The position numbers and the translations under genes were made by a program. DNA of 64,000 nucleotides from positions 1 to 64,000 of the IMG/VR virus record IMGVR_UViG_3300037882_003354; one strand, written 5' to 3'. This document shows positions 1,812-45,602 of this stretch, in pieces. The stretch's first letter is position 1, and each line of letters begins with the position of its first letter. The notes under the pieces are model-generated. The model was not told where the DNA came from. It saw only the letters and a program-made list of their open reading frames with translations, and searched no databases.

Positions 1812-2011
1812 GTAAAACTACCCATAAACAACAAATAATTGATGCTGCTTTGGAAGGTCTACATCAGGGCGGATTCAGTCAAGAATATGCATACCTGTTT
1901 GCGAAATTACTTGACAGAGTGTACACTTCGGGATATAATGAAGGTAAGTGGTCGGGTCAACAAGAACAATACCTAGTGAACCTTGGCTCACAGATTTATA
2001 CGAGAGGTTGA
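1808..2011 (+). CDS. Hypothetical protein
   Basis: 67 aa; ATGA overlap. Confidence 0.6.
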   Translation: MSKTTHKQQIIDAALEGLHQGGFSQEYAYLFAKLLDRVYTSGYNEGKWSGQQEQYLVNLGSQIYTRG

Positions 2012-2012: not shown

Positions 2013-2195
2013 ATGAATGAAGTATTTGTTGTTTTCTATGATGAGGTTTATTATGGCTACGGCGAGCGTGGTACCGAACAGCGTAGAATTGAAGGTGTTT
2101 TTGACACTGATGAAAAGGCACGTGCCAAGGTGCGAGAGTTAGAGAAACTACCACAGATCGCTTATGCTGACTTTGATGTTTTTGAGGTGTTGTGA
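2013..2195 (+). CDS. Small hypothetical protein
   Basis: MNEVFVVFY...IEGVFDTDEKA; GAGG RBS. Confidence 0.6.
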   Translation: MNEVFVVFYDEVYYGYGERGTEQRRIEGVFDTDEKARAKVRELEKLPQIAYADFDVFEVL

Positions 2196-2422
2196 TGAAC
2201 GAACGAATTCGAGAACTTGCTGAACAGGCAATCATACCATTTCAAGATGAAAATCTCATGAAGTGTTATCATTTTTCAAAAGAAAAGTTTGCCGAACTGA
2301 TTGTGAAGGAAACGATTAATGAAATGGTTTCCCAGCTGTGGAATTATGGTATAGATGAATCAAATAATCCATCGTTTTATAAAGCAATAGACAGGACCAA
2401 ACAACATTTCGGAGTTGAATGA
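2192..2422 (+). CDS. MNERI/KFAELIV/HFGVE family small protein
   Basis: All three family blocks present. Confidence 0.8.
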   Translation: MMNERIRELAEQAIIPFQDENLMKCYHFSKEKFAELIVKETINEMVSQLWNYGIDESNNPSFYKAIDRTKQHFGVE

Positions 2423-2766
2423 TGAAGGTCGGTGAACTTTACGAACACATTGGCAGGATTGTAACTTACGGTGATGCTGATGCCGAAGTGGTAATTCAGA
2501 TCAAACTTCCATATAATACTGTAGGCGGCAGTCCAGTAGTCAAGGTCAAGCAAGTTCAGATGGGATTTGACTGGGATAGCGGTAAATTCATCATTGTTCC
2601 TGAAGAAGACCTAACTCCAAGCGACCGAGACTTTGCCAAGCAGATGAAAGAGATGCAAGATCGGGCTGGCTGGGCAGACTATGAGAATCGCAATCTCAAG
2701 GCAGAAGTCAAGCAACTAAGAAAGAAACTAAAGGTGGAAAATGGATCCAATTCGCAAAGCGTTTGA
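2419..2766 (+). CDS. Hypothetical protein
   Basis: 115 aa; ATGA coupling. Confidence 0.65.
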   Translation: MMKVGELYEHIGRIVTYGDADAEVVIQIKLPYNTVGGSPVVKVKQVQMGFDWDSGKFIIVPEEDLTPSDRDFAKQMKEMQDRAGWADYENRNLKAEVKQLRKKLKVENGSNSQSV

Positions 2767-2995
2767 AGACGTAACTGCCCAGGCTTTCATGGGCGATGAT
2801 TGTGTGTATGATTATCAACGACTTAAAAAATTGTATCCACGAAAGCCCAGCGGCGAATACAACAACAGTGTCGTTGAAGATCATTGGCAGACTTTCCAAG
2901 AGGGTTGGGAAGAAGCTGTCAAATACTTGACAAATAGAGACAATCCATGCTATACTGATGTTGTTAGCAATGGTGGAATGGATCCTAGGAGTTGA
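2741..2995 (+). CDS. Hypothetical protein
   Basis: 84 aa. Confidence 0.6.
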   Translation: MDPIRKAFEDVTAQAFMGDDCVYDYQRLKKLYPRKPSGEYNNSVVEDHWQTFQEGWEEAVKYLTNRDNPCYTDVVSNGGMDPRS

Positions 2996-3328
2996 ATGAT
3001 GGGAACTAATATCAATCTCAAGCAAGAATTCAGGAATTACTTTGATGGACTAGAAGGATTCGCACTTCGTTCAGAAAGATTCTATGATGAATTCGAGTCT
3101 GGTGTTATGCGTGAGAAGCGTATTCTGGAATGGCTAGAAGCAGCATATATTGCTGGTGCTAGGAAAATGGCGCAGGATACTCTGGACACACTCGGTGATT
3201 ATGCCTGTGCCCTGTCTGGACTTAAGCCAGAGCTTATCAAGCCAGAAGAAATATACGATCGCGCACATAGCAATCTTATGGTGTATTATACCAAGGTATT
3301 GGATGATGCAGAAAGGATTGAAGAATGA
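2996..3328 (+). CDS. Hypothetical protein
   Basis: 110 aa; GGAG RBS. Confidence 0.65.
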   Translation: MMGTNINLKQEFRNYFDGLEGFALRSERFYDEFESGVMREKRILEWLEAAYIAGARKMAQDTLDTLGDYACALSGLKPELIKPEEIYDRAHSNLMVYYTKVLDDAERIEE

Positions 3329-3630
3329 GTAACCAACCAGAAGCCCTGCGGCTGGCTGATGCCATTGATCCGCTGATCCGCAATCGGCTCGACAACCTGA
3401 CCTGCGCTACTGCCGCCACCGAACTGCGGCGCCTACATCAGTCTGAGAGGGAAGGCTGGCGATATGCTGCGGAGCTTGAACAAGAACGCATCCACTTGAA
3501 CGCGGTGAATCAAGAACTGCTAAATGCACTACACTGCATCAGTCTCGCGTCACAAGATTCTGGTAGCACAAGGGAGGGCATGGGGTTATATGCCCGTGCC
3601 GCCATCGCCAAAGCGGAGGAGCAAGCATGA
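3325..3630 (+). CDS. Phage hypothetical protein (QPEALRLAD...ARAAIAKA)
   Basis: 101 aa; coupled. Confidence 0.7.
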   Translation: MSNQPEALRLADAIDPLIRNRLDNLTCATAATELRRLHQSEREGWRYAAELEQERIHLNAVNQELLNALHCISLASQDSGSTREGMGLYARAAIAKAEEQA

Positions 3631-3893
3631 ATAGGGAAGAACTGATCCGCATGGCGCGGGAGGCTGACCAATACGCTGACGACCACGCCCCGGCATGGAC
3701 TCAAACTCCGCAAGAATGGCAGGAGTTGCGCGATCACCGCTTTGCCACATTGGTCGCCGCTGCCGAGCGCGAAGCGTGTGCGAAGGTGTGTGATGAGTTT
3801 GCCGCGCATTACTGGGCTAAAGACGATGCTGTGGAGTCGGTGATCTACGAAGAATGCGCCGCCGCCATCCGCGCAAGGAGCAACAATGTTTAA
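3627..3893 (+). CDS. Phage hypothetical protein (IRMAREA...AEREACAKVC...AAAIRAR)
   Basis: Common phage small-ORF motifs. Confidence 0.75.
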   Translation: MNREELIRMAREADQYADDHAPAWTQTPQEWQELRDHRFATLVAAAEREACAKVCDEFAAHYWAKDDAVESVIYEECAAAIRARSNNV

Positions 3894-4716
3894 GCTGAAA
3901 GAATACCACAAAGACCAGCATTGGAGCCGTTATGCGCTCAATGTGTCTAATCCACATGAGTATTATGAATCTGGGCATTGTGCTACTCGCTATTGTATGT
4001 TAAATATCGCACTAGGCAAACACTCTTGGTGGTGGCAGATTCCCGAGTTCTTCAAGCCGCGCAAGAAGTGGGTTGATCTTTCTAAAGAATCTTGGTGCAA
4101 GTCTGAACAAAAGGGATATTGGGAACATATTCGCCGAGAGTACGGATTCACAATCTCTGACGACAACATTCACGTTCACTACGGCATTCAACCTGGATCT
4201 TGGTCTTCACGTGACAAGAAGAACTCTGACCATACCAAGCTGTTTGGAATTCCCTGGCTGCAGAAGCGATACGTTCATGAGAAGTTCTATAGGCCAGACT
4301 GGAAAGAGTTTGGTGTCTGTGAGCCCATGAAGAGTAGCAGGCTGGACTTTGATTTACTGCACAAAATCAAAGATATGGTTCCCAAGATCAAGTTTAGGTT
4401 CAATGACTACGATGGCGAAGAGATTGTTGCTACTTGCTACATCAGCGAAATGCGTCATGAACACGGCACTGGTTGGTTCAAGTGGTTGAAGTATTTTGTC
4501 GAGCCTCTAATTACTCGCCGTCTTGATCTTGAGTTCAGCAAAGAGATTGGATATGAAAAAGGTAGCTGGAAAGGCGGCACATTGGGTCACTCTGTTGAGA
4601 TTGCGTACGGAGAAGATCCACTGCAAGCATTCATTCGCTATGGTACCGCCGATGATCGCTACAAGAATCATGGAACAAAGAATCGTGGATTCACTAACAT
4701 CCAGAGAATTGAGTGA
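3886..4716 (+). CDS. Hypothetical protein
   Basis: 276-aa Trp/His-rich ORF; coupled. Confidence 0.75.
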   Translation: MFKLKEYHKDQHWSRYALNVSNPHEYYESGHCATRYCMLNIALGKHSWWWQIPEFFKPRKKWVDLSKESWCKSEQKGYWEHIRREYGFTISDDNIHVHYGIQPGSWSSRDKKNSDHTKLFGIPWLQKRYVHEKFYRPDWKEFGVCEPMKSSRLDFDLLHKIKDMVPKIKFRFNDYDGEEIVATCYISEMRHEHGTGWFKWLKYFVEPLITRRLDLEFSKEIGYEKGSWKGGTLGHSVEIAYGEDPLQAFIRYGTADDRYKNHGTKNRGFTNIQRIE

Positions 4717-4991
4717 TGGCTAAAACATTGTTTGTATGCTCGACATATGAACGAGCAAGATACCATTTCAACAAACTCTTGAAGTTATATGAGGATAATA
4801 ACATTTTGGGTATTGCATCCCCCTCACGCTTACGCATTGAAGTGAATTCTAATACTTACGAATTTATTTGGTCAGATGGCATTCGTGATAAGGTTGTGGG
4901 AAGAACATGTAGTAGTATAATCATTGATGAATATGCGACGATAACACCAGAACAATATTCACTTCTGCAATCACGAAAGAGGACGGAATGA
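4713..4991 (+). CDS. Small protein with a Walker-B-like motif
   Basis: GRTCSSIIIDEY resembles a terminase/helicase Walker B; no Walker A. Confidence 0.5.
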   Translation: MMAKTLFVCSTYERARYHFNKLLKLYEDNNILGIASPSRLRIEVNSNTYEFIWSDGIRDKVVGRTCSSIIIDEYATITPEQYSLLQSRKRTE

Positions 4992-5182
4992 TGTTAGTAA
5001 AACTTACAGATCAAGACTATGTGAATCCAGAAGATGTTTCAAGTGTCTATGTTCGTGAATACAATGAGCACGCCTTTGTGAAAATGCGTGATGGAACAGA
5101 ATACTCAGTCTATCCTCTTTATGGAATGATGAAACACGAGAATCTTAATAGAATTGTAAAATTAATAAATGGAGTTGACTAA
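4988..5182 (+). CDS. Hypothetical protein
   Basis: 64 aa; coupled. Confidence 0.6.
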   Translation: MMLVKLTDQDYVNPEDVSSVYVREYNEHAFVKMRDGTEYSVYPLYGMMKHENLNRIVKLINGVD

Positions 5183-5557
5183 ATGAGCAAGCTATCAGAT
5201 CAATTTACCACACAAGTTCAAGACTTCTACAGAGTTCCGAGGACTAAACCTACGCTTTCTAATTTCAGTGCCAAGACCGTGATCGATGGTTCTTCGCATG
5301 AATACTACCGTCAGCGTCAAGTCAAGGTTATTGCCAAGTTTGAATACACTGGGTGGATCAACGAAACAAAGACTCCCGGAGATGAGAACCAGAACTACTC
5401 TGCGTTCTTGAACACTGTCCGTCGACAAGTCATTGAAGAAGTATTCGGTGAGTTCCGACCATTCATTTATGAAATGAACACTGCGCTCTATGACGAGGAT
5501 CTAACTCGGATTAGGACTCTGCTAGCTAATTTAGAACAACAAATGTTTACGGTGTAA
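5183..5557 (+). CDS. Hypothetical protein
   Basis: 124 aa; GGAG RBS. Confidence 0.65.
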   Translation: MSKLSDQFTTQVQDFYRVPRTKPTLSNFSAKTVIDGSSHEYYRQRQVKVIAKFEYTGWINETKTPGDENQNYSAFLNTVRRQVIEEVFGEFRPFIYEMNTALYDEDLTRIRTLLANLEQQMFTV

Positions 5558-5581
5558 GGAATAGATAATGAGGAATAAGAA

Positions 5582-5839
5582 ATGAACGAACGAATCCTAG
5601 CAATATATCGTCAAAGCCATACTGAAGGTTATTTGGGTAAAGCATTTGATCCAGAAAAATTTGTTGAACTCATCAAGCAAGCAATTTATGATGATGTAAA
5701 ACAAGACCTGATCGAAGATTCTGAGATTAACATAGAGCCGGACAGTCCACAGCGTCAATATCTTAAAGGCTGCAATGGTGGAGTAACCGATGCTTTGTAT
5801 CGAATCAAAATGTTCGGGGTAGATGAGGAAGAACAATGA
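5582..5839 (+). CDS. MNERI family small protein
   Basis: MNERI...EKFVELI...MFGVDEE. Confidence 0.75.
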   Translation: MNERILAIYRQSHTEGYLGKAFDPEKFVELIKQAIYDDVKQDLIEDSEINIEPDSPQRQYLKGCNGGVTDALYRIKMFGVDEEEQ

Positions 5840-6117
5840 ACGAACGTATCCTAGAACTCGCCAAGCAAGCAGGTCTCAAGAAAGAACACGGTGCTGATCG
5901 TGAGTATATGGGTGACTTTGATTGGCGACAGTTCGCCGAGTTGATTGTTAGGGAATGTATTGAACAACTGGTCAAAGAAGGCGATGCTTGGGAACAATTC
6001 AGTCGCAATCCTCCCCAAGGTCAAGAGACCAATGCCAGTGCCGCATTGTTTGCCGCATACAGGTTGAAGGAAGATGCGGTATCTAGATTAGAAGAACATT
6101 TCGGAGTTGAAGAATGA
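5836..6117 (+). CDS. MNERI family small protein
   Basis: MNERILELAKQAG...FAELIVREC...EHFGVEE. Confidence 0.8.
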   Translation: MNERILELAKQAGLKKEHGADREYMGDFDWRQFAELIVRECIEQLVKEGDAWEQFSRNPPQGQETNASAALFAAYRLKEDAVSRLEEHFGVEE

Positions 6118-6272
6118 ACAATACTGATATTGTAGGTATAAAAACATACAATCCCAAATATGACGATAATCTAGTGCTGATCCAGCGAGATGGTGTATGT
6201 ATTAGTTTGGAAGAGTATGTATCTCAAAAAGTTGCCGAACAGATTAAAGAACATTTTGGAGTTGAAACATGA
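6114..6272 (+). CDS. 52-aa ORF ending KEHFGVET (not in the ORF track)
   Basis: Read manually: MNNTDIVGIK...IKEHFGVET; ATGA overlaps on both sides. Confidence 0.65.
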   Translation: MNNTDIVGIKTYNPKYDDNLVLIQRDGVCISLEEYVSQKVAEQIKEHFGVET

Positions 6273-6511
6273 ACGATTATGATATGAATATACACACAAA
6301 TCCTGATGCAAGAGCCTGGGCTAAATTCTTTACTGAAAAGTATAAAGTATGGTCGGAAGATGGTGTTGAATCTGATAGTGAGGCTTTAATGACTACATGG
6401 TTCGCCAATGCCATGATGGCGATGCACGATTATTTGGTATTGAAAGATAATCCAATCAATGGAGATCATGCTCAATATCTATTAGATAAAGAAAACGGAG
6501 TTGAAGAATGA
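6269..6511 (+). CDS. Hypothetical protein ending GVEE
   Basis: 80 aa; carries the junction motif. Confidence 0.7.
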   Translation: MNDYDMNIHTNPDARAWAKFFTEKYKVWSEDGVESDSEALMTTWFANAMMAMHDYLVLKDNPINGDHAQYLLDKENGVEE

Positions 6512-6768
6512 ATGAACGAACGCTAGAACTTGCCCTGCTGGCAGGTCTCAAGAAGGCGCACGGTGCTGACCGTGAGTATATCGGCGATTTTGATTGGCGA
6601 CATTTTGCTGAGTTGATTGTGAAAGAATGTGCTGAATTGTTTGTAGACCAAAGATACATGATCCTAAGTCCACATGAGCCATTTGCCAATGAAAGAGTTC
6701 GTGCGTTGAAAGAACACGACAAGGATACTGTTAAAAAGATTAAAGAACATTTCGGAGTTAAAGAATGA
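6508..6768 (+). CDS. MNERI family small protein
   Basis: N-half nearly identical to 5836..6117. Confidence 0.8.
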   Translation: MNERTLELALLAGLKKAHGADREYIGDFDWRHFAELIVKECAELFVDQRYMILSPHEPFANERVRALKEHDKDTVKKIKEHFGVKE

Positions 6769-6908
6769 AACGCAATTATCGTGGTTGGAGTATCTATATG
6801 TGTTCCGCCAGTAGATATTTTGCAGTTCGTCATGGTGTCCGTATGAATGCCAACACTGAGGAATTGTTGATTACCATGATTGATCTACGTCCAGTTTGGG
6901 GGAAATAA
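6765..6908 (+). CDS. 47-aa hypothetical protein (not in the ORF track)
   Basis: MKRNYRGWSIY...PVWGK; coupled on both sides. Confidence 0.55.
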   Translation: MKRNYRGWSIYMCSASRYFAVRHGVRMNANTEELLITMIDLRPVWGK

Positions 6909-7111
6909 TGAACGAACGAATTAAAGAAATTGCTGCACAGGCTGGACTAAGATTTACTCAACTAATGAGCAATCCAATGGTTCCTGTTGTAGATGGTAAA
7001 GAAACAGATTTGGAAAAGTTCGCCGAGTTGATCGTCAGGCAGTGTGCTGAGATTTGTTTGGAAGCAAACGACCATGATAATATCCTAAGATATTTTGGAG
7101 TTGACGAATGA
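6908..7111 (+). CDS. MNERI family small protein
   Basis: MNERIKE...KFAELIVRQC...YFGVDE. Confidence 0.8.
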   Translation: MNERIKEIAAQAGLRFTQLMSNPMVPVVDGKETDLEKFAELIVRQCAEICLEANDHDNILRYFGVDE

Positions 7112-7326
7112 ATTCCCGAATGCAAGATTTGATGTATGAATCGGGACTGACAGCACAGGGTTGTTGGGATCAAATGGATGAGTATGATCGAGCGGCAATT
7201 GAAAAATTTGCTCAGTTGATTGTTCGGGCGTGTGCCGACGTGGCTGCTACGGTTGTTGTCGAACACGAAGGGGTGGATTTTGGTCTGACGGCCGCCTGTC
7301 ATGAACATTTCGGAGTTGAAGAATGA
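7108..7326 (+). CDS. MNERI family small protein
   Basis: KFAQLIVRAC...EHFGVEE. Confidence 0.8.
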   Translation: MNSRMQDLMYESGLTAQGCWDQMDEYDRAAIEKFAQLIVRACADVAATVVVEHEGVDFGLTAACHEHFGVEE

Positions 7327-7703
7327 TTTCTGAACAACTTAGAAAATATATTGACATGGTCATTAAAGAAGAACAAGATGACGTGCTTCACGAAATGGCC
7401 AATTTGGGCAGTCATAATCACGGAATACCAGATGTTGTCATCTGGGTGGGAAAAGCAAATAAACAACATGGGTTGAGAATCAAAGTTTCCAATCTAAAAA
7501 ATCGTTGGAGCAACGATGACAATTTTGTAATTCAATTGCCACAGTTGGATCATGATCCCGATCAAGTTGCTCGATGGATCACAGTTGATGTGATGAAAAA
7601 AATCATGGACTGGGTCAAGTTGAATCAGCAAGTGTTACATGATTTTGAAACTGACAAGATCATGTATACAGACCAATTTATCAGTCAAATTTCCAAGGTA
7701 TAA
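7323..7703 (+). CDS. Phage hypothetical protein (LHEMANL...HGLRIKV)
   Basis: 126 aa; coupled. Confidence 0.7.
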   Translation: MISEQLRKYIDMVIKEEQDDVLHEMANLGSHNHGIPDVVIWVGKANKQHGLRIKVSNLKNRWSNDDNFVIQLPQLDHDPDQVARWITVDVMKKIMDWVKLNQQVLHDFETDKIMYTDQFISQISKV

Positions 7704-7704
7704 A

Positions 7705-7893
7705 ATGCACGAACGAATGCGAGAATTTGAGAAACAATGCTGGAATCATCAAGCCAATTGTTTGGATGCGAAAAAGTTCGCCCAGTTGATTGTGAAAGAA
7801 TGTGTTGGCATTGTAGCAGATGCTGTTGATCATCGTGAACCCGCAAGCACTTATGTAGGCAAAATTAAACAACATTTTGGAGTTGAAGAATGA
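7705..7893 (+). CDS. MNERI family small protein
   Basis: MHERMRE...KFAQLIVKEC...KQHFGVEE. Confidence 0.75.
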   Translation: MHERMREFEKQCWNHQANCLDAKKFAQLIVKECVGIVADAVDHREPASTYVGKIKQHFGVEE

Positions 7894-8123
7894 ACGAACA
7901 AATTCGATCACTTGCCATGCAGTCTGGTGCACGGGAAGCGAAAACCGTGCTCAACTCACCACCGGCGCTATCATTGAACGGGGATGAGATTGCAGAGTTC
8001 GCTCAGTTGATTGTGCGGGCATGTGCCCAGATCGGTGAATTAAAAGAACAAGGCCATGAAGATTATGACCCTGACATGTCAGTTGGCTGGTACATGCGGC
8101 AGCATTTTGGAGTTGAAGAATGA
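7890..8123 (+). CDS. MNERI family small protein
   Basis: FAQLIVRAC...QHFGVEE. Confidence 0.8.
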   Translation: MNEQIRSLAMQSGAREAKTVLNSPPALSLNGDEIAEFAQLIVRACAQIGELKEQGHEDYDPDMSVGWYMRQHFGVEE

Positions 8124-8302
8124 ACTATCCACAACTTGACCGTGACACACCGGAACAATGCCAAATGTTCGACCAGTATCTGAATGACACCGAAGAACTG
8201 GAAGATCGCAGCCGACGAGGTCGGGGATTGAGTTATGATGAAGCAGAATGGGAAGCATTTCAGTATGGGTGGAATGCTGCTCGTGCCCATTTTGGAATTT
8301 AA
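8120..8302 (+). CDS. Small protein ending HFGI
   Basis: 60 aa; last ORF of the array. Confidence 0.65.
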   Translation: MNYPQLDRDTPEQCQMFDQYLNDTEELEDRSRRGRGLSYDEAEWEAFQYGWNAARAHFGI

Positions 8303-8348: not shown

Positions 8349-8570
8349 ATGCGATATTGGACCATAGCCACACCACATCCAGAGACAGACGAACCTGTCT
8401 ACGAAACATTAAGTGAAGATGAAATACTTGAGCAGTATTATCCTTACTGGTCTGGTAAGATGATCGAGAAGTATGGTCTAGAAGAATTCAACAAGACTTG
8501 GTCAAAGAAGGAATGTATAGAAGATTGGGTAACAATTCATTGGGCATGGAAGAGTTCTGAAAGTCATTGA
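8349..8570 (+). CDS. Hypothetical protein
   Basis: MRYWTI...IEDWVTIHWAW; GGAG RBS. Confidence 0.65.
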   Translation: MRYWTIATPHPETDEPVYETLSEDEILEQYYPYWSGKMIEKYGLEEFNKTWSKKECIEDWVTIHWAWKSSESH

Positions 8571-8595
8571 CACCGCCCTGTTTCTAGTGTATAAT
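8567..8595 (+). promoter_or_regulatory. Consensus sigma70 promoter
   Basis: TTGACA-17 bp-TATAAT. Confidence 0.85.
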
Positions 8596-8602: not shown

Positions 8603-9103
8603 ATGAGGTGGGCAATGTGCATGGCGGTGTTGGTGGCAGTCGCTGCATGTGCGTCGTATGGTAGTTCGTATGTCTTGGCTGATGTAACTGACGTGAACAA
8701 TCATGTCAATGACGCCATTGAATTTGGCACTGACCAGGACAATTGGGGTGTGCGAGATTATTGGACCAGTCCAGACGAGTTATTTGCCCTGGGCTCTGGT
8801 GATTGTGAAGACTATGCCATTGCCAAGTATTTTATTTTGTTAAAGCATGGAATAGATGCCCACCGTTTGAAATTATGGTATGTCCAAGCACCTGTTGGTG
8901 CACACATGGTGCTGGCATATGATTGGTATCCGGTATCGTCGACATATGATCCCTTGATTTTAGACAACATGGTACCAGTCATACTGCCATTGTCACAACG
9001 TAACGACCTAGTACTAATTTTTAGTTTCGATCAAGACACTCGAAACATAAAAAGATGGAACAATGTTTTAATCAAAGCAAGATCAGAAGGGTACATCCAA
9101 TGA
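8603..9103 (+). CDS. Transglutaminase-like cysteine peptidase (BTLCP/C93, LapG-like)
   Basis: Signal-like N-terminus; WGVRDYW, GDCEDYAIAKY, HMVL, LDN (Cys-His-Asp triad). Confidence 0.85.
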   Translation: MRWAMCMAVLVAVAACASYGSSYVLADVTDVNNHVNDAIEFGTDQDNWGVRDYWTSPDELFALGSGDCEDYAIAKYFILLKHGIDAHRLKLWYVQAPVGAHMVLAYDWYPVSSTYDPLILDNMVPVILPLSQRNDLVLIFSFDQDTRNIKRWNNVLIKARSEGYIQ

Positions 9104-10514: not shown

Positions 10515-11108
10515 ATGTATTCAAATCTTGTACCCATGGTGGTAGAGCAATCGGCTCGCGGTGAGCGCGCCTTCGACATCTTCTCACGTCTGTTGAGCGA
10601 ACGAATTGTGTTCCTCAACGGGCAGGTGGACGAACAGTCGGCCAATCTGGTGGTGGCACAGATCTTGCACTTGGAGAGTTCAGATTCCGAGAAGGACATA
10701 CATTTGTACATCAACTCACCAGGCGGGGTCATCACGGCTGGCATGGCCATCTATGACGTCATGCAGTTTGTCAAGCCCGATGTGTGCACTTATGTCATGG
10801 GTCAGGCTTGTTCCATGGGCTCGTTCCTGGCGCAGGCTGGCACTCCGGGCAAGCGTTTTGTACTACCCAACTCCAGAACCATGATTCATCAGCCGTCGGG
10901 TGGTGCTCGTGGCATGGCCAGTGATATTGAAATTTCCTACAACGAAATCATGTACTGGAAGAAACGGCTGACTGAACTGTATGTCAAGCACAATACCCAG
11001 GGCAAGACCTACGAAGAATTTGAACGTAACATGGATCGTGACACCTTCCTGAGTGCCCAAGAGGCCCTGGACTTTGGGTTGTGCGACAAAATCATTCAGC
11101 AACGGTGA
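10515..11108 (+). CDS. clpP: ATP-dependent Clp protease proteolytic subunit
   Basis: [22 protein letters not shown] (catalytic Ser), [12 protein letters not shown]. Confidence 0.97.
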
Positions 11109-11167
11109 TGGGCTGGGGATTAAATTATGGTCGTTTAATGATTAAATAGCCCACAGGGGCTGGACCA

Positions 11168-11344
11168 TGTTATTGTACGTTTGGATACTCATGATTCTTT
11201 TGACCATATCGGTGATTGGCTGGGTCTGGGTATTTTTTACCATTCGCAGATTGATGATTGCCAACCATTGCGGTGCAGAAATAGTCACAGAAATCAAAGA
11301 AGACATCCAATCAATAAAAACTTCCTTGAAAGAACTAGAATAGT
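11168..11344 (+). CDS. Small membrane protein (not in the ORF track)
   Basis: MLLYVWILMILLTISVIGWVWVFF...LKELE: one TM helix plus coiled coil. Confidence 0.5.
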
Positions 11345-11401
11345 TATTGATATTTCCTGTACAGTGCCGTAAAATAAAAGAATTACACAAGGTATTAACA
11401 A

Positions 11402-11914
11402 ATGACAACACAGCCAGTGACTTATAAATTTACATCTACCAAAGAATACATTGATGCGTTTCCAGTAGCCTATCGACAGTGGCGTGCTGACAGCCATTGC
11501 AATTTGATTCATGGATACTCCTTCAGTATGAAGTTCTTCTTTGGTACGAATGATCTTGATGTTCGTAACTGGTCTGCGGATTACGGCGGATTGAAGGAAT
11601 TGAAGAATGTGTTGCAAGATAAGTTTGATCATTGTCTCTTAGTCAGTTCCGATGATCCAGAACTCGAAACATATAAACTCCTACAAGAAAAGAAGATGGC
11701 TAAACTAACCATTTTACCTAAACTTGGATGCGAAGGTTTAGCTGATATGTTATACAAATACATTAATGCTGTTTATATCCCAGATATGTGGGGACCGAGC
11801 GAAGCCGAAAGACTTTGGTGTTACCGTGTAGAAGTGAGAGAAACACAATCTAATATGGCTTTTAGAGAAGGCCACCGAGAGTGGAACGAAGATTTATTTG
11901 AAGGATTTGACTGA
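11402..11914 (+). CDS. queD: 6-carboxytetrahydropterin / 6-pyruvoyl-tetrahydropterin synthase
   Basis: HCNLIHGYS, DYGGLK, KFDH, VEVRET. Confidence 0.88.
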   Translation: MTTQPVTYKFTSTKEYIDAFPVAYRQWRADSHCNLIHGYSFSMKFFFGTNDLDVRNWSADYGGLKELKNVLQDKFDHCLLVSSDDPELETYKLLQEKKMAKLTILPKLGCEGLADMLYKYINAVYIPDMWGPSEAERLWCYRVEVRETQSNMAFREGHREWNEDLFEGFD

Positions 11915-11954
11915 TTTCATATAAATAAACATAGTTAGTAGCAAAGGACGAACT

Positions 11955-12815
11955 ATGTATTATGGATTTATTTATGAATGGACTAATGATCTTAATGGTA
12001 AAAAATATATTGGTTCACACGCAGGAACAATAGATGACGGTTATATCGGTTCGGGAAAAGTTTTCATAAGGGCTATAAAAAAGCATGGCATTGAAAATTT
12101 TACAAGAACCATCATTGAATATGTTGAAGTAAAAGATAGACAATATCTTTTAGAGCGTGAAAAGTTTCATTTAGATAAAGTGAATGCTTATTACTCTAAC
12201 GACTATTACAATGTTGCTAAAGATGTCATAGGTGGCGATACCAAAGCAGGATGGACTAACGAACGCCGTCAAGAGTTTAGCAATCAAATCAAGCAAGTTT
12301 GGGCCAAAAGAACGGAAGAAGAAAAAAAGACATTGTTTGATACCATTCGTAGTAAAACTAAAGAATGGTATCAAACTGAAGAAGGTGACCGATTTAAAGA
12401 AAAGTTGCGTTCCAATGTTCCTCGAATGGTCGAGGGTATCAAAGCCCGCGAGCCAGAAGATAGAAAGCGCAGTGCCCGTTTGGGCAAAGAGCGAATGGGT
12501 GCTGAACGTAGAAAAGAAGTTGCCCGCAAAGGCGTAGAAAATCGTAATCCCGAAACCGAAGCATTGGCAAGACAAAAGGCATTAGAAACCAGAGCAAATT
12601 GGTCAGAAGAAAAGCGTAAAGAAGTTTTCGAGAATAGCAGTAAAGGTAGAAAAGGTAAATGTATTGGTGCCAAAAATGGCAGGGCACGAAAGATTTACGC
12701 TGAGTCTAGAACATTTGACACATTGAAGGATGCCATGCTACAATTGAACATATCTGAATACAAACTGCAAAGTAGATTAAAAGATCCAAACAACAAAGAA
12801 TATTATTATCTATGA
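11955..12815 (+). CDS. Free-standing GIY-YIG (Seg-like) homing endonuclease
   Basis: GFIY...KKYIGSH, YIGSG, YYN; basic C-terminal region; AT-rich. Confidence 0.85.
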   Translation: MYYGFIYEWTNDLNGKKYIGSHAGTIDDGYIGSGKVFIRAIKKHGIENFTRTIIEYVEVKDRQYLLEREKFHLDKVNAYYSNDYYNVAKDVIGGDTKAGWTNERRQEFSNQIKQVWAKRTEEEKKTLFDTIRSKTKEWYQTEEGDRFKEKLRSNVPRMVEGIKAREPEDRKRSARLGKERMGAERRKEVARKGVENRNPETEALARQKALETRANWSEEKRKEVFENSSKGRKGKCIGAKNGRARKIYAESRTFDTLKDAMLQLNISEYKLQSRLKDPNNKEYYYL

Positions 12816-13063
12816 ATGAACGAATTAAAGCACTTGCCGAACAGGCTTGGGATGCCACAGCGGTGAGCCCAGACTTTAATCATCCTGTTTCATTTGCTGA
12901 AAAATTATCCGAGTTGATTGTGCAGGAATGTATCGACAAGATTGAAACATATCAGATTCCTGTTGGTAACAGTACCGCTGGTGAAATGGCCTGTGAATGG
13001 ACCTATGACGCATTGAAAGAAATTAGGGACGATATTAAAGAACATTTCGGAGTTAAAGTATGA
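12812..13063 (+). CDS. MNERI family small protein
   Basis: MNERIKALAEQA...ELIVQEC...KEHFGVKV. Confidence 0.8.
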   Translation: MNERIKALAEQAWDATAVSPDFNHPVSFAEKLSELIVQECIDKIETYQIPVGNSTAGEMACEWTYDALKEIRDDIKEHFGVKV

Positions 13064-13155
13064 GATACAAATTTAAGGTAGAAGTAAGAGAAACTCAATC
13101 AAACATGGCTTTCAGAGAAGGCCACAGAGAGTGGAACGAGGATTTGTTTGCGTGA
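13060..13155 (+). pseudogene. Displaced duplicate of the queD 3' end
   Basis: Encodes MRYKFKVEVRETQSNMAFREGHREWNEDLFA; 13078-13150 matches 11828-11900 with synonymous changes. Confidence 0.85.
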
Positions 13156-14330
13156 AAAAACATACGGCAGTTGTGGGAGCAGGTATCACTGGCATGACCG
13201 CAGCCTATTATTTGGCTCGAGCAGGACATCAGGTGACCGTATACGAGCAAGAACGATATCCTGCCATGCGAACCAGTTTTGCCAACGGTGGACAGATCAG
13301 CGTCAGTAACAGTGAAGTATGGAACACTTGGAGCAATGTTAAAAAGGGCTTCAAATGGATGCTGAAAAAAGACGCGCCATTGTTGGTCCGTCCTCGTCTG
13401 GATTGGGCACAGTGGGAATGGATGTTTAAATTTTTGTATTACACCGTGACCGGTGCTTATGAAAAGAACACCAGGGAAACCATACGACTGGGTCTGGATT
13501 CCAGGGACTTGTACCAGCAGATGATTAAAGACGAACTGCTGGAGTTTGATCAAAGTCGCAGTGGAATTTTACATTTTTATCGAGATCCACTGTATTTCCA
13601 GCATGCAATCAATGTAAAAGATCTCTATAACAGCAGCGGCGTAGAGTGGGACATATTGGAACCACTGCAGACCAAAAGCCTTGATCCTGCTCTGTGTGAT
13701 CTAACAGGCGTAGTAGGAGGTGCCTGGACTCCTGAAGATTGGACCGGTGACATACACAAATTTTGTGTGCAACTGGCACAAGTCTTAGAAGAAAAATATG
13801 GTGTTAGTTTTGTATATGGCTCAAATACTGATCTAGAGCAACTTGCTGTTGACCATGATCATGTGGTGGTTTCTGCAGGTGTGGGCAGCGTAAAATTAGC
13901 AGCCAGCATTGGGGATCATTTGCCCATCTATCCCATCAAGGGATATAGTATCACAATCCAGGTACGTGATCAAGATCTCATACATCTACCACGAGTGAGT
14001 TTGCTGGACGATCAGGCCAAGATTGTGACCTCCACACTGGGCAATAAATTTCGTGTGGCGGGCACTGCTGAGTTGGCTGGCGAGAATTATGACATCAGGG
14101 CAGACCGGATTGCTCCTCTGCTAAAATGGGTGCATGACAATTTCCCTGGTATAAACACTAGTGAATATTCCAGCTGGGCATGTCTTCGGCCCATGACTCC
14201 CAACATGCTGCCCATAGTAGAGCAGAGCCAGACCAATCACAAAGTATACTATCATACTGGTCACGGCCACTTGGGCTGGACCCTTAGTCCGGCCACGGCC
14301 AAACAACTGGTAGATAAGATGTCCAACTGA
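13152..14330 (+). CDS. dadA: FAD-dependent D-amino acid dehydrogenase
   Basis: VVGAGITG, TSFANGGQIS, YPIKGYSIT, RVAGTAE, WACLRPMTP, GHGHLGWT. Confidence 0.9.
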   Translation: MKKHTAVVGAGITGMTAAYYLARAGHQVTVYEQERYPAMRTSFANGGQISVSNSEVWNTWSNVKKGFKWMLKKDAPLLVRPRLDWAQWEWMFKFLYYTVTGAYEKNTRETIRLGLDSRDLYQQMIKDELLEFDQSRSGILHFYRDPLYFQHAINVKDLYNSSGVEWDILEPLQTKSLDPALCDLTGVVGGAWTPEDWTGDIHKFCVQLAQVLEEKYGVSFVYGSNTDLEQLAVDHDHVVVSAGVGSVKLAASIGDHLPIYPIKGYSITIQVRDQDLIHLPRVSLLDDQAKIVTSTLGNKFRVAGTAELAGENYDIRADRIAPLLKWVHDNFPGINTSEYSSWACLRPMTPNMLPIVEQSQTNHKVYYHTGHGHLGWTLSPATAKQLVDKMSN

Positions 14331-14516
14331 CATGAAGAAAATTTTAATGGCGGGTGGTGCAGGATTTTTTTGGGATAATCCAGGAAAATGCATCATGCTA
14401 GGGTTGATGCAGAAAGTCATTGACTTTGCGTCGTCTTCAAGTATAATAGTATACAAGCACTTGCCCATACAGGGTTACAATATACTACTAACTACTTTCC
14501 CACTAAAAAGAGAATT

Positions 14517-14987
14517 ATGGAAATCCAACCCAAACAACTAAATTTTGCCAATTGTGAAGCCGGTACAGAATATAGGTATAATGCCATCACAGCCCTGTTG
14601 CATGAGCATCAGTGCACTGTTGATTTTGTTAAACTTGACGGCGAGACTCGTACCATGCCCTGTACCCTGCGTTCCGATCTCATGCCAGTGGCCACACAGA
14701 TGATCAAAGAAGACATGGTGAACAAACCTGTAAACTATGAAACCATCACAGTCTGGTGCACTGACAAGCAGGCCTGGCGCGCCATGAAGACCATGAACGT
14801 GACCTCCATCAGGGTCGCACCCACTTCCTGGACGGTGACAGTAGAGCAAGATCCTGCAACTGGTGACATCCTGCTGCCCTTGCCACCTGATGTGCTGACC
14901 ATGCGTGGTTGGAACGAGGGAGACACCCTGGAATGGTCGGACAACGGCGACGGATCTTGGAGCCTGTCCAAAGTCCATGAACTGTAA
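14517..14987 (+). CDS. SH3/WYL-like domain fused to an AbrB-like domain
   Basis: VDFVKLDGETRTMPCTL...WRAM; then ILLPLPPD...GWNEGDTLEW. Confidence 0.55.
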   Translation: MEIQPKQLNFANCEAGTEYRYNAITALLHEHQCTVDFVKLDGETRTMPCTLRSDLMPVATQMIKEDMVNKPVNYETITVWCTDKQAWRAMKTMNVTSIRVAPTSWTVTVEQDPATGDILLPLPPDVLTMRGWNEGDTLEWSDNGDGSWSLSKVHEL

Positions 14988-15239
14988 TACTTGTCACAAA
15001 GAATACACCGTCCGGTGTGCACTAAAACAGGGCCGATGCCCACATCATGCACCATTAATTGAGGTAAAAAATATGATACAAATTTTTAAACCACTGCGAG
15101 AACGCATCAGCTATATCAAGAGTTTCACCGGCATTGTATGTGGAATCATACTATGTGTGAGCGGCTGGGGACTATTGGCTTACGTGCTGGGCGTCATGCT
15201 GATTCTAGCAGAGATCATCATTCTTTTGGAGAAATTGGA

Positions 15240-15422
15240 TTGAACTCAGTACAACAACGCATGGCAGAATTGATGGAGCCCATCAACCGTCAGATTATGA
15301 TGTGTGATTCCACACAAGAAATGCTCATGATTGCCAGTGCCATGATGGTCAGTGCCAAGGAAATTTTCGATAATCATATTGGTGTGCAGGGTCGTAAACA
15401 AATGTTCAAAGATCTGTCATGA
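15240..15422 (+). CDS. Hypothetical protein
   Basis: LNSVQQRMAELMEPI...; coupled to uvsE; start uncertain. Confidence 0.45.
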   Translation: MNSVQQRMAELMEPINRQIMMCDSTQEMLMIASAMMVSAKEIFDNHIGVQGRKQMFKDLS

Positions 15423-16453
15423 AAAACATCAAGCGTCTGGCTTTTGCCTGCAAGTGGATTGACTCCATGGACCAGGTGGACGCAATCAAGCCCACTGACG
15501 ACTGCAGAAAATACAACACCAGTACCACCACGGTGGCCTGGTTGAATCGGCAGCCACGGGATGTGGCAGTACAAAAACTCTGGGACCTGATGGTGAGCAA
15601 CATTGAGTCTGTTCGACTGTTGGTGGAGCGAGTGGGATTCCTGCAGCCGCACCTGCGCATGGTCCGACTGGGCTCAGATCTACTGCCAGTGTACACACAG
15701 GCAGATTGGTCCTGGTTTTGGAAGCGGCCGGATGTAATCGCATATTGTGAACAGCAGTTTGCCAGGATTGGCGCAATCGCTCGTGATCGTGATGTCAGGC
15801 TGTCCATGCATCCTGGACAATTTGTGGTGCTGGCCAGTGAAACTCCTGCCATTGTGGAACGCAGTATAGAAGAATTTGAGTATCATGCGGACATGGCACG
15901 TTGGATGGGTTTCGGTCGTGAGTTTCAGGACTTCAAGATCAATGTGCACATCTCAGGACGGCTGGGTCCTGCAGGTATTCGCACCGTATATCAACGCCTC
16001 ACTCCCGAGGCACGCAACTGTTTGGCTATTGAAAATGAGGAAATGACCCATGGATTGGATGATTGTCTCGCTATTTCTGATCTGGTGGCTATCACACTGG
16101 ACATACATCATAATTGGATTAAAACAGGAGAGTACATCTCCCCAACCGACCCTAGGATCGATCGTGTTATTCAGTCTTGGCGCGGTCGCCGGCCTACTAT
16201 GCATTATAGTATCAGCCGTGAAAATGTTCTCCTGGATCACAGCACTACTGTGATGCCTGATCTGGCCAGCCTGCTGGCATCAGGACACAACCGTCAGAAA
16301 CTCAGGGCGCACAGTGATACCTATTGGAATACCACGGCAAACGACTGGGCGCTGAGTTTCCTGGATCGATTCGATCTCATGTGTGAAAGTAAATCCAAGA
16401 ATCTTGCCAGCTTTGCACTGGCCAGTCGAGCCCAAGAATTAAACCTTCTTTGA
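15419..16453 (+). CDS. uvsE: UV DNA damage endonuclease (UvsE/UVDE)
   Basis: RLGSDLLP, RLSMHPGQFVVLAS, IENEE, LDIHH, LRAHSD, MCESKSKNLA. Confidence 0.9.
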   Translation: MKNIKRLAFACKWIDSMDQVDAIKPTDDCRKYNTSTTTVAWLNRQPRDVAVQKLWDLMVSNIESVRLLVERVGFLQPHLRMVRLGSDLLPVYTQADWSWFWKRPDVIAYCEQQFARIGAIARDRDVRLSMHPGQFVVLASETPAIVERSIEEFEYHADMARWMGFGREFQDFKINVHISGRLGPAGIRTVYQRLTPEARNCLAIENEEMTHGLDDCLAISDLVAITLDIHHNWIKTGEYISPTDPRIDRVIQSWRGRRPTMHYSISRENVLLDHSTTVMPDLASLLASGHNRQKLRAHSDTYWNTTANDWALSFLDRFDLMCESKSKNLASFALASRAQELNLL

Positions 16454-16747
16454 AGGTGCCTTGACTTTCTTTGCAGCCGGGGCCTTGACTCGGGCTGTAG
16501 TTGCTTTTGTGGTCTTCACTGGCGTTTTTGCCACAACCACTGGTGCCGACTTGGCTGTTCTGGGCTTGCGTGGTTTCTTGGCAGGCGCCACTTCCACCAC
16601 AGCTTCAGCAACTGGTGTTTCGATCTTGTAAGGGGCCTGGTCCCAGATCTCATCTAGGGTGGGCGCTGTTTGCTTGTACCTGTGGCCCACCCAGGCGGCG
16701 GCGCCTGCTGCCAGGGCAAGAATGGCGAGAATGATAATGATTTCCAT
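16439..16747 (-). CDS. Membrane-anchored Lys/Ala-rich protein
   Basis: Hydrophobic N-terminus; histone-like basic tail; AGGA RBS. Confidence 0.65.
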   Translation of the reverse strand: MEIIIILAILALAAGAAAWVGHRYKQTAPTLDEIWDQAPYKIETPVAEAVVEVAPAKKPRKPRTAKSAPVVVAKTPVKTTKATTARVKAPAAKKVKAPSKKV

Positions 16748-16802
16748 TTGGGGTTTCCTTTAAAGAAGTTTATGTGTTTATTTAACTCCGAATAAATACC
16801 AT

Positions 16803-17372
16803 GTGGAAAAAACATTACATGAGTTGAGCAAGATCATAACACTGGCTGAATCAACTAAAGAACAGTTGGTTCTGGCACCGTTACCCTATGCTCGCGATGA
16901 TCTTGACCCTGTATTGAGTGCGGAGTCCTTGGTCAACCACCATGACAAACTGGCACAAGCCTATGTCACCAGATATAACAATGGTGAGGGGGATGCAGAG
17001 TTCAATCAGGCCGGCGCATTTCTGCACAATATCTTTTTCCCACAACTACAGGCACCCATGGGCGGCAACAAACCACATGGCGCCAGTGCTGAGTTTATCG
17101 AGCGACATCACAGCAGTTTTGACCAATTGAAAAGCCATGTGGAGACCCAGGCCATGGGCATACAAGGCAGCGGGTGGGTTTACCTGGCTCGCAATGGTGA
17201 AGTAAAAACCATTAAAAATCATCAAATACGGCAGGACATCGTGCTGCTAATAGACTGGTGGGAGCATGCTTTTATCTTGGACTACGGCACTGACAAGGCA
17301 AAATACTTAAAAAACATATGGAGGATCATCAACTGGTCGGTTATCAACGACAGAATACACTTGAACAAGTGA
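16803..17372 (+). CDS. sod: Fe/Mn superoxide dismutase
   Basis: LPYARDDLDP, HHDK, FLHNIFF, QGSGW, DWWEHA. Confidence 0.92.
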   Translation: MEKTLHELSKIITLAESTKEQLVLAPLPYARDDLDPVLSAESLVNHHDKLAQAYVTRYNNGEGDAEFNQAGAFLHNIFFPQLQAPMGGNKPHGASAEFIERHHSSFDQLKSHVETQAMGIQGSGWVYLARNGEVKTIKNHQIRQDIVLLIDWWEHAFILDYGTDKAKYLKNIWRIINWSVINDRIHLNK

Positions 17373-17669: not shown

Positions 17670-18824
17670 ATGACCTCACCCACTTGGATTACCCCGGCAG
17701 GATTTTTATTCACTGCCACTGAATTATTGATCACCGCCACCACGGTGATGGCCGTGGGCACACCCACATACACTCTGATAAGTGGTGCCCTGCCCCTGGG
17801 TCTGACATTATCCACTGCCGGCGTGATCTCGGGCATACCGTCGGGTGTGTTGGATGTCGGTCGCAGTGAATTCGTCATCCGAGCAGCCAACTCATCGGGC
17901 AAGACTGATCGCACATTTTATGTTGATGTTGCAGGGCCTGATGCACCCATCTGGCTAATACCCGCAGATTATTATCTGCCCGTGGGCATACGTGGCGAAT
18001 CATATGCTCTGAACAAGCAATGGGTAGATTATCAGCTGACCGCCCAGCCGGTGCAGGCCCCAATCAACACTCCGTTGAAGTATTACATAGCCAGGGGCGA
18101 TGGACTATTACCACCAGGTCTGACACTGAGTCAGACCGGCAGAATAACCGGCTACGTCAACGACCAGTTGTCCTACGAAGCTGACATTTCTGTACTGGGT
18201 GGATACGATGACGAGGCTTATGATAAATTTCCCTACGATCATGGTGGCAGTTACCTGGGATCCATCACCGATGCCAGCATGGCAGGCTTGCCCAAGATCT
18301 ATCAATTCATAGTCACTGCAAGTGACGGTGTGGCGCAAGAAAAAAGATTATTCAAGATTGTGGTCACTGACACTATCATTCTGACTTTCAATTTAAAGTC
18401 CATGCCTGAAGAGCTGACAACGTCAACCAGCGTGTTGTACGTACCATTGTCCACCAGCACAATATATGCACCATTACCGCAGTGGATCAATGGCTCAGAC
18501 CTAGGCACTGTGCGCGCTAACAACAACGTCAGCATCGATGTGTCGGCTTATGATCCATATAACTTGGTATTACGAGACAATCAAAATTTTACATCTGTTC
18601 CTGATGTGATCGTGGACATCGTAACACCTCCACCGCCACCGCCACCACCGCCTCCCCCACCGCCTCCCCCACCGCCACCGCCTCCTCCACCGCCTGTGAC
18701 CACGCTGGGTGTCTATGATGTCGGCATTTACGAACCGGGCATATACAATCAGACTGTGGTCTCAAGCGATGTGGTGTTCGAGGCTGGCATATACGAACCA
18801 GGCATCTACTACGATGCTGCATAA
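17670..18824 (+). CDS. Ig-like (He_PIG-type) virion structural protein, N-terminal part, with poly-Pro tail
   Basis: SGALPLGLTLS..GVISG and LPPGLTLSQTGRITG repeats; poly-Pro tract; YEPGIY x2. Confidence 0.75.
   Translation: MTSPTWITPAGFLFTATELLITATTVMAVGTPTYTLISGALPLGLTLSTAGVISGIPSGVLDVGRSEFVIRAANSSGKTDRTFYVDVAGPDAPIWLIPADYYLPVGIRGESYALNKQWVDYQLTAQPVQAPINTPLKYYIARGDGLLPPGLTLSQTGRITGYVNDQLSYEADISVLGGYDDEAYDKFPYDHGGSYLGSITDASMAGLPKIYQFIVTASDGVAQEKRLFKIVVTDTIILTFNLKSMPEELTTSTSVLYVPLSTSTIYAPLPQWINGSDLGTVRANNNVSIDVSAYDPYNLVLRDNQNFTSVPDVIVDIVTPPPPPPPPPPPPPPPPPPPPPPPVTTLGVYDVGIYEPGIYNQTVVSSDVVFEAGIYEPGIYYDAA
18626..18694 (+). repeat. Poly-proline coding tract
   Basis: Over 20 consecutive CCN codons. 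Confidence 0.9.
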
Positions 18825-45580: not shown

Positions 45581-45602
45581 ACAACAATTAAGAATATTTA
45601 GT

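Follow-up and report, generated by a model that had tools for sequence, protein, structure and literature searches.

What is the tightly packed row of very small genes near the start of this viral DNA, and how did its members come to share short DNA blocks separated by unrelated sequence? We examined a window of 64,000 nucleotides (positions 1 to 64,000 of IMG/VR record IMGVR_UViG_3300037882_003354), which belongs to the complete 322.5 kb genome of a T4-like jumbo phage from fresh water. The initial annotation had described about ten small ORFs between 2192 and 8302 that share up to three conserved DNA blocks (encoding MNERI, KFAELIV and HFGVEE), the last of which also carries the next gene's ribosome-binding site and an ATGA stop/start overlap. 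The array proved to be as described, and its extent greater than had been reported. By contrast, only part of the accompanying interpretation, a recombinase-free, integron-like cassette system, was upheld.

To determine whether the blocks exceed chance, we scanned the window for each of them. The N block gave 9 matches (0.4 expected), the M block 6 (0 expected) and the C block 9 (0 expected), all on the + strand, and in the whole genome the blocks occurred only between 2195 and 13063. A profile HMM built from the members identified nine full members of a small-protein family (about 76 aa), each arranged as N block, variable module, M block, variable module and C block, the last carrying GGAG and the ATGA overlap for the next gene. 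Member 1 (2195-2422, 75 aa; N block 2195-2208, M block 2285-2304, C block 2404-2425) is isolated from the main array, which spans 5582-8302. The main array begins with member 2 (5582-5839, 85 aa), in which both the M block (EKFVELIK) and the C end (MFGVDEEEQ) are diverged, followed by member 3 (5836-6117, 93 aa; M block 5929-5948, C block 6096-6117), member 4 (6508-6768, 86 aa; M block 6601-6620, C block 6747-6768), member 5 (6908-7111, 67 aa; M block 7016-7035, C block 7090-7111), member 6 (7108-7326, 72 aa; M block 7204-7223, C block 7305-7326), member 7 (7705-7893, 62 aa; M block 7774-7793, C block 7872-7893, with GGAG at 7879-7882 and ATG at 7890) and member 8 (7890-8123, 77 aa; M block 7995-8014, C block 8102-8123). 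Member 9 (12812-13063, 83 aa; M block 12902-12921, C block 13042-13063) lies outside the range initially annotated.

The ATGA overlaps and the placement of GGAG 7 nt before each downstream ATG were confirmed, as was the claim that the ORFs at 6114, 6269, 6765 and 7323 start at such junctions. Three ORFs carry only a C-block-like end: 6114-6272 (52 aa, started at the junction, C block 6251-6272, HFGVET), 6269-6511 (80 aa, non-family, started at the junction, degenerate C block 6490-6511, NGVEE) and 8120-8302 (60 aa, started at the junction, ending in HFGI), which is the last gene of the array. Two further ORFs are cargo: 6765-6908 (47 aa), whose stop overlaps the next ATG by 1 nt, and 7323-7703 (126 aa). 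All of these genes lie on the + strand. The stretch 2419-5582, although inside the range initially annotated, is not family; it holds ten other small genes, including a gene at 3886-4716 (+) that lies in the same co-directional chain and matches the Pfam Acb3 family of CBASS inhibitors (PF25187, E 7e-45, 154 bits against a cutoff of 27).

We next asked how widespread the family is. At least 120 viral contigs carry the exact 28-nt junction, and 476 family ORFs were found in 126 sequences, up to 14 in a row. A total of 9,848 clusters at 50% identity matched the family at E<=1e-3, none of them annotated, and all look-alikes in the ESM Atlas were viral and labelled hypothetical. By contrast, megablast, blastn and tblastn searches of 50,697 phage records found no close relative among isolated phages, and a search with the 40-nt junction gave only a chance hit. 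No hit reached a curated cutoff in Pfam, PHROGs gave none, and Foldseek searches of PDB and AFDB returned no fold match with E below 0.2. String searches of the literature for the motifs found nothing relevant.

To investigate whether the blocks are conserved as DNA and not only as protein, we compared codon use in the M core with the background in the same genes. Codons that are rare elsewhere in these genes were retained in the block (AAG 86% vs 36%, TTC 77% vs 21%, GCC 86% vs 21%, GAG 89% vs 21%, TTG 87% vs 29%), whereas the adjacent V and R codons varied freely. The identical-codon fraction was 0.77-0.84 in the blocks of unrelated members, compared with 0.64-0.69 inside homologous modules, and intact C-block DNA was read out of frame in 12 of 296 cases. 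The codon statistics for the N and C blocks are partly biased, because most loci were retrieved with a pattern spanning that junction, and only the M block is unbiased; the binomial P values ignore shared ancestry, and the GGAG and ATG requirements alone explain part of the C-block conservation. The modules themselves evolve normally, under purifying selection (dN/dS 0.13, dS about 0.75).

The two variable modules reassort almost freely. Among 250 N types and 253 C types we observed 365 combinations; one N type paired with 11 unrelated C types, and one near-identical C type with 6 unrelated N types. Within the array, member 3 shares its N module with member 4, and the C module of member 4 is shared with L004:13142, L026 and L107 (L numbers denote other array-bearing loci), each behind a different N module. 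We initially took the 412 "full-length" homologues of member 3 as a sign of ordinary orthologues, but alignment showed that only the C module and the blocks are shared; this C module occurs in more than 60 metagenome proteins, each with an unrelated N module. Identity stepped sharply at -6 and +27 nt around the M block, the edges of a 33-nt island, and 59 of 100 module pairs with at least 90% nt identity lay in loci that are otherwise unalignable. The shuffling is read from mosaics in assembled contigs, with no recombination event observed directly.

Whole genes showed the same behavior at the C/N junction. For the cargo gene 7323-7703, DNA similarity to the window in relatives was confined to 7304-7718, that is, from the C block to the next N block. 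In L170, the same flanking genes enclose different content, and contigs from four independent studies broke at block edges and showed other arrangements. Most apparent joints in this mapping were other paralogues mapping to the blocks rather than deletions, and we used only the long multi-piece contigs as evidence. Identical cassette order across relatives and conservation at the amino-acid level only had been named beforehand as outcomes that would refute the initial annotation; neither was found.

Structure prediction was conducted to examine the proteins. AF2 models, the second of which was of member 8, reached pLDDT values of 80 and 83.5 with the same architecture, an acidic helical protein in which the constant segments form the predicted core. 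The N helix (MNERIKELAEQAG), the start of helix 2 (EKFAELIVREC) and the end of the last helix (IKEHFGVEE) are constant, and the variable modules are a loop or beta-hairpin and a helical-hairpin tip. A predicted homodimer gave an ipSAE of 0.59, against 0.02 for the best control, with block residues at the interface; in the tool's calibration this mark was reached by 20 of 30 proteins solved as pairs and 1 of 23 solved as single chains, counts that hold only roughly here because our own alignment was used.

We then searched the genome for machinery that could act on the blocks. Genes for gp23 and UvsX/RecA were present, but no tyrosine recombinase (PF00589, no hit in the complete genome, with positive controls at 14 of 14), serine recombinase or resolvase, or reverse transcriptase (RVT_1) was found. 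Ten junctions folded with z scores from -1.4 to +1.8 and no shared hairpin. Sigma-70-like promoters were enriched around the main array (53 found against 29 +/- 5 expected), whereas terminator-like sites were not (11 against 10.7 expected). A perfect consensus site (12 of 12) lies upstream of the chain at 1911-1939 (+), with similar sites at 2927-2956 (11 of 12) and 8567-8595 (12 of 12), and no site of 10 of 12 or better lies inside 5582-8302 in this consensus scan, made without transcript data.

Collectively, these findings suggest, with a probability of roughly 0.7, that the array belongs to a very large, unannotated family of small (median 76 aa) proteins of T4-like freshwater phages, whose coding blocks of about 14, 33 and 22 nt act as crossover points for the phage's general recombination, either UvsX-type or microhomology-mediated, in an apparently early, hyperplastic region. 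In this view, no site-specific enzyme is needed; N and C modules would reassort at the M block, and whole genes, including unrelated cargo genes, would be inserted, deleted and exchanged at the C/N junction, a ready-made unit of GGAG, 7-nt spacer, ATGA and an unstructured A-rich start that would keep them translationally coupled. Repeated exchange and conversion would keep the blocks identical at synonymous sites. T4 recombines at microhomologies of 6-10 bp (PMC9391042), although the blocks are short for classical homologous recombination. Our analysis establishes the anatomy, the nucleotide-level conservation, the mosaicism of modules and cassettes, purifying selection on the modules, the absence of dedicated recombinases and the T4-like host genomes, while the recombination pathway, polycistronic early expression and dimerization are inferred, as is the initial claim that anything recombined in at the junction is automatically expressed. 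The proposal that the family is a library of host-directed binders, for takeover or anti-defense, is the most weakly inferred; its anti-defense context rests on the single Acb3-like neighbor, and the cargo genes show no functional theme.

A bolder reading, which we regard as doubtful although not excluded, is that the blocks are not a mere by-product of gene conversion but are maintained as recombination "sockets". T4-like freshwater phages would then share a community-wide, recombinase-independent combinatorial library, in which two independently swappable binding modules sit on a constant dimerizing scaffold and any cargo gene can be plugged in with built-in translational coupling, to inhibit rapidly changing host targets such as defense systems. 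Because the constant blocks form the predicted dimer interface, paralogues could also heterodimerize, which would multiply the specificities. Phage dark matter consists largely of small early ORFans whose origin and turnover are poorly understood, and this abundant family, with about 10,000 clusters at 50% identity, offers a concrete example in which one can read how such genes are built, exchanged and, by inference, kept expressed. It also provides an unannotated scaffold with natural libraries of modules to screen for anti-defense or host-takeover activities.

Among known systems, the promoter-early stem-loop (PeSL) cassettes of T4-type phages (Arbiol 2010, PMC2839356; Comeau 2014, PMC4122927) are also short conserved sequences repeated through hyperplastic regions, which serve as homologous-recombination points for inserting, deleting and swapping small ORFan genes and bring expression signals with them; here too, the end points of indels and replacements between related phages lay in the repeats. 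Recombination between neighboring PeSLs also forms mini-circles. However, PeSLs are intergenic, about 100 bp long, and consist of a sigma-70 promoter and a terminator stem-loop, whereas the blocks are coding (14-33 nt), hold no -35/-10 pair or stem-loop, supply translational rather than transcriptional signals and lie inside the genes, so that half-genes are shuffled as well. The gp38 tail-fiber adhesins (Trojet 2011, PMC3157838) likewise combine constant motifs forming the structural core with interchangeable variable segments drawn by recombination from a community-wide library, but gp38 is an unrelated virion adhesin with four segments and one copy per genome, without tandem arrays, a gene-junction role or reported nucleotide-level block freezing; moreover, our constant segments are helical rather than glycine-rich, and the locus looks like an early region rather than a tail-fiber locus. 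On the favored reading, the coding blocks of 14-33 nt act at once as structural core, translational-coupling junction and crossover site, and the array extends the PeSL and gp38 ideas from regulatory cassettes and adhesins to a whole class of accessory proteins, reaching inside the genes, with two-module combinatorial diversity and no dedicated enzyme.

The comparison with integrons did not hold in any defining sense. Integron cassettes share one orientation and have a conserved sequence at every boundary, as in the array, and they are promoterless and expressed from upstream signals, which for the array is inferred from the consensus scan alone; but we found no IntI integrase, no attC-like folded imperfect inverted repeat and no attI/Pc platform; exchange also occurs inside the genes, and the assembled contigs, in which circles could not be sought, gave no evidence of circular cassette intermediates. 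In Rhs/CdiA polymorphic toxins, a short motif kept at the DNA level separates a constant part from swappable modules, and silent or orphan modules recombine in at that motif, but those are large delivered bacterial toxins with cognate immunity genes, whereas these are phage proteins of 60-100 aa with two variable modules and no immunity partner. Diversity-generating retroelements, too, are phage-encoded ways of diversifying a binding protein on a constant scaffold; here, however, there is no reverse transcriptase and no template/variable repeat pair, and the variants are unrelated modules under purifying selection rather than adenine-mutagenized copies.

Of the alternatives, the one that survives best, although unlikely, concerns function: the N block may be a T4-style capsid-targeting and protease leader, making the family packaged and injected internal proteins like T-even IPI-III rather than early cytoplasmic proteins. 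The host genomes are T4-like, the consensus MNERIKELAE has the length and (L/I)-x-E ending of the T4 capsid-targeting sequence, and T-even internal proteins are anti-defense factors (PMC9391042). However, only 67% of members have an (L/I)-x-E at either candidate position, whereas a cleavage site should be near-invariant; the N helix packs into the core and the dimer interface in the models, and the surroundings look like early genes with sigma-70-like promoters. Less likely still is a dedicated enzyme that recognizes the blocks, such as an unrecognized recombinase or the SegE-like GIY-YIG homing endonuclease at 11955-12815 (+), whose stop overlaps the start of member 9. The M and C blocks do share the DNA core TTCG..GAGTTGA with a 2-nt offset, which could be a common recognition site, but Seg-like genes occur in only 2 of 131 array-bearing sequences, the genome has no tyrosine or serine recombinase or reverse transcriptase, and crossovers spread over the whole 33-nt island rather than falling at one point.

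It is very unlikely that the blocks are frozen only by RNA-level or translation-level constraints (ribosome-binding site, start region, coupling hairpin or RNase processing at GGAG) beside modules that simply diverged. The junction does hold GGAG, optimal spacing, ATGA and an A-rich start, and 79% of members end in an ATGA overlap, but the M block lies mid-gene without an initiation role and shows the same codon freezing, the junctions have no conserved structure, and divergence cannot produce modules at 90-100% nt identity beside unrelated modules with step-like identity changes. Finally, although all the data are metagenome assemblies and repeats of 20-33 nt can confuse low-k de Bruijn graphs, chimeric assembly is the weakest alternative, since identical arrays of 3-14 genes were assembled independently from different samples (L004/L005, L007/L060, L044/L064, L021/L098 and L097/L102/L119), protein P0036 is on 19 contigs, Logan contigs from other studies span several blocks of the window's own arrangement (for example, 7491-8299 at about 98% identity), and the blocks are shorter than the final k-mers usually used.

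Two neighboring genes were also considered. The ORF at 3627-3893 was examined as a distant member, but its hhalign probability was 5% and it is not counted; gene 8603-9103 has only distant relatives and was of no use as a flank marker. Greedy ORF calling, which fails in the array because antisense ORFs are longer there, gave a rough figure of 8-16% for ATGA overlaps elsewhere in the genome.

The window is the first 64 kb of a virus record that is complete at 322,512 bp, and its 99-nt terminal overlap means that position 1 is arbitrary. It encodes a T4-type gp23 capsid protein (E 1.4e-81) and, at 45271-45642 on the minus strand, a tmRNA of the betaproteobacterial type (RF01850, 139.5 bits) for which ARAGORN gives the tag peptide AANDDAYLMAA, hinting at a betaproteobacterial host. 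Positions 1-15 kb form one co-directional chain of small genes on the plus strand. The initial annotation had described three DNA blocks (N, M and C) shared by small ORFs between 2192 and 8302, and we confirmed that this observation holds. Allowing up to 2, 3 and 3 mismatches, the N, M and C blocks gave 9, 6 and 9 matches, where about 0.4, 0 and 0 are expected, and genome-wide they occur only between 2195 and 13063. An HMM built from the members detected nine full members, of which eight lie in the range of the initial annotation and one lies at 12812-13063, whereas three ORFs carry only a C-block-like end. The C block ends each gene and places GGAG 7 nt before an ATG that overlaps the TGA stop. 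An additional 88-aa ORF at 3627-3893 on the plus strand (MNREELIRMAREA...RFATLVAAAEREACAKVC) resembles the N and M motifs of the family, with an hhalign probability of only 5% in the profile comparison.

To investigate how widespread the family is, we extended our analysis to sequence and profile databases. No matches were found in Pfam or PHROGs, and nothing was found among 50,697 isolated-phage records. By contrast, one member alone has 412 metagenome homologues, and the exact 28-nt C/N junction occurs in at least 120 IMG/VR contigs of 4-374 kb. A profile search of 1.84 billion representatives returned 9,848 clusters at E<=1e-3 and 2,497 at E<=1e-10, and the look-alikes in the ESM Atlas are all viral 'hypothetical proteins'. 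In 125 fetched loci (designated L with a number) plus the genome, we observed 476 members, up to 14 in a row. Some genomes hold two arrays: the loci L036 and L056 lie on the same 374-kb record, at 176-184 kb and 198-206 kb, so that one jumbo phage genome carries at least two separate family arrays about 20 kb apart. All three complete array-bearing records tested (171, 353 and 374 kb) have gp23, with two score classes, so at least two T4-like lineages carry the family.

We next determined whether the blocks are conserved at the nucleotide level, using the variable parts of the same genes as background. The M core, which was not used to retrieve any locus and is therefore unbiased, keeps codons that are otherwise rare: AAG for Lys in 86% against 36% in the background, TTC for Phe in 77% against 21%, GCC for Ala in 86% against 21%, GAG for Glu in 89% against 21%, and TTG for Leu in 87% against 29%. 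The next Val and Arg codons vary freely, so there is ordinary protein-level constraint plus an extra DNA-level constraint. The codon counts for the N and C blocks are partly biased by our retrieval pattern, and all P values ignore shared ancestry. Among members that share neither module, same-residue codons are identical in 77-84% of block positions, whereas the figure inside homologous modules is 64-69%. In 12 of 296 cases (among them L004:9984, L170:1371 and cases in L075, L013 and L021), the intact C-block DNA is read in another frame, so that the upstream gene ends in '...TFRS*' with a stop 4 nt before the next ATG; the DNA block therefore persists where the peptide does not. The M and C block consensus sequences (for example at 7774-7793 and 7872-7893) are also similar to each other at the DNA level with a 2-nt offset (GAAAAGTTCG-CC-GAGTTGA against GAACATTTCG-GAGTTGA), for which shuffles gave P of about 0.001-0.007. 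The M block might be a fossil gene junction, or both blocks might share one recognition core.

The variable modules between the blocks are shuffled. The 372 distinct members fall into 250 N-module and 253 C-module types, giving 365 combinations, in which 64 N types have more than one C partner and 74 C types have more than one N partner. One N type occurs with 11 unrelated C modules, and one C type at about 95% identity occurs behind 6 unrelated N modules. In the window, the members starting at 5836 and 6508 share the N module but not the C module, and the 61 closest 'homologues' of the member at 5836 share its C module and its blocks but have unrelated N modules. The DNA identity profile anchored on the M block is step-like: unrelated pairs are 68-90% identical from -6 to +26 nt and random (0.28) elsewhere, pairs that share only the C module become random exactly at the 5' edge, and pairs that share only the N module become random exactly at the 3' edge. 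Of 100 module pairs with at least 90% nucleotide identity, 59 sit in loci with less than 5% other alignable DNA, and those 59 pairs never share the other module. The modules are real coding sequence, with a dN/dS of 0.13 and a dS of about 0.75.

Whole genes are likewise exchanged at the junction. We found that 79% of members end in an ATGA overlap and that about half of these junctions lead into non-family ORFs. The cargo gene at 7323-7703 has relatives at about 80% nucleotide identity whose similarity to the window is confined to 7304-7718, that is from the C block to the next N block, and these relatives are flanked by family genes with different modules. The locus L170 keeps homologues of both genes flanking the main array, but three unrelated genes lie between them. 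Contigs of four independent freshwater studies stop matching at block edges, at 5930, 6118, 6908, 7013/7032, 7772 and 7892. Two longer contigs show other arrangements, with a 196-nt extra unit between two M blocks and the N half of the member at 5836 leading towards the C half of the member at 6908, whereas other contigs confirm the order of the window itself, for example over 7491-8299. Identical multi-gene arrays recur in different samples, which excludes chimeric assembly as the source. Cargo genes are mostly ORFans and show no functional theme.

With regard to mechanism, the genome has a UvsX/RecA homologue but, in searches of the complete record, no tyrosine recombinase, serine recombinase or reverse transcriptase. 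A SegE-like GIY-YIG homing endonuclease at 11955-12815 on the plus strand has a stop that overlaps the start of the isolated family member at 12812-13063, yet Seg-like endonucleases accompany only 2 of 131 arrays. The junctions have no conserved RNA structure. T4 is known to recombine at 6-10 bp microhomologies flanking accessory genes (PMC9391042). We therefore conclude, by inference, that general or microhomology recombination at the blocks does the shuffling; in this view, repeated exchange, together with the requirements for the RBS and start codon, would keep the blocks identical. While the block conservation and the mosaic structure of modules and genes were observed directly in the sequences, the recombination pathway, early expression and any function of the proteins are inferred. 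In a consensus scan, sigma-70-like promoters were enriched in 1-14.5 kb (53 found against 29 +/- 5 expected), with perfect sites at 1911 and 8567 and none of 10 of 12 or better inside 5582-8302, which fits an early polycistronic unit.

Two AF2 models (pLDDT 80 and 83.5) share one predicted architecture, consisting of an N helix (N block), a loop or beta-hairpin (N module), a long helix starting at the M block, a loop, and a last helix ending in the C block. A homodimer prediction passed its controls (ipSAE 0.59 against 0.02), with residues of all three blocks lying in the predicted interface. In the calibration of the method, that mark was reached by 20 of 30 proteins solved as pairs of one chain and by 1 of 23 solved as single chains, although these counts hold only roughly here because our own alignment was used, and the prediction is support for a dimer rather than proof. 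The proteins are acidic, with a median net charge of -6, and the fold searches returned no significant match. The only functional context is a 276-aa ORF at 3886-4716 on the plus strand, in the same coupled and presumably early gene chain as the array, which strongly matches the Pfam family Acb3 (CBASS inhibitor, E 7e-45); Acb3 inhibits CD-NTases according to bioRxiv 10.1101/2025.07.23.666291. A role of the family in host takeover or anti-defense is plausible, but rests on this context alone.

The system works like the previously described PeSL-mediated modular shuffling (PMC2839356, PMC4122927) and like gp38 module swapping (PMC3157838), but it fails defining features of both, as well as of integrons and DGRs. 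A literature search for the motifs found no paper mentioning them in the library searched. The initial annotation had interpreted the array as a recombinase-free, integron-like cassette system generating small early proteins for host takeover or anti-defense, and our results bear this out only in part: the shuffling and the absence of a recombinase are supported, the integron analogy holds only loosely, and the proposed function remains a hypothesis.

Just past the array, a cluster of auxiliary genes lies at 10515-17372, comprising a ClpP protease (10515-11108), a PTPS/QueD-like gene (11402-11914), a DAO-type FAD oxidoreductase (13131-14330), a UvdE UV endonuclease (15419-16453) and an Fe/Mn superoxide dismutase (16803-17372). 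A DAO homologue also follows a family gene in the locus L096. Long antisense ORFs (75-125 aa) run opposite the family genes on the minus strand at 6456-6833, 6958-7308, 7681-7932 and 8063-8290; they are probably a compositional by-product, but misled simple longest-ORF gene calling. Further downstream, at 17670-18824 on the plus strand, a 384-aa protein carries a He_PIG Ig-like domain and an uninterrupted run of about 27 prolines near its C terminus.
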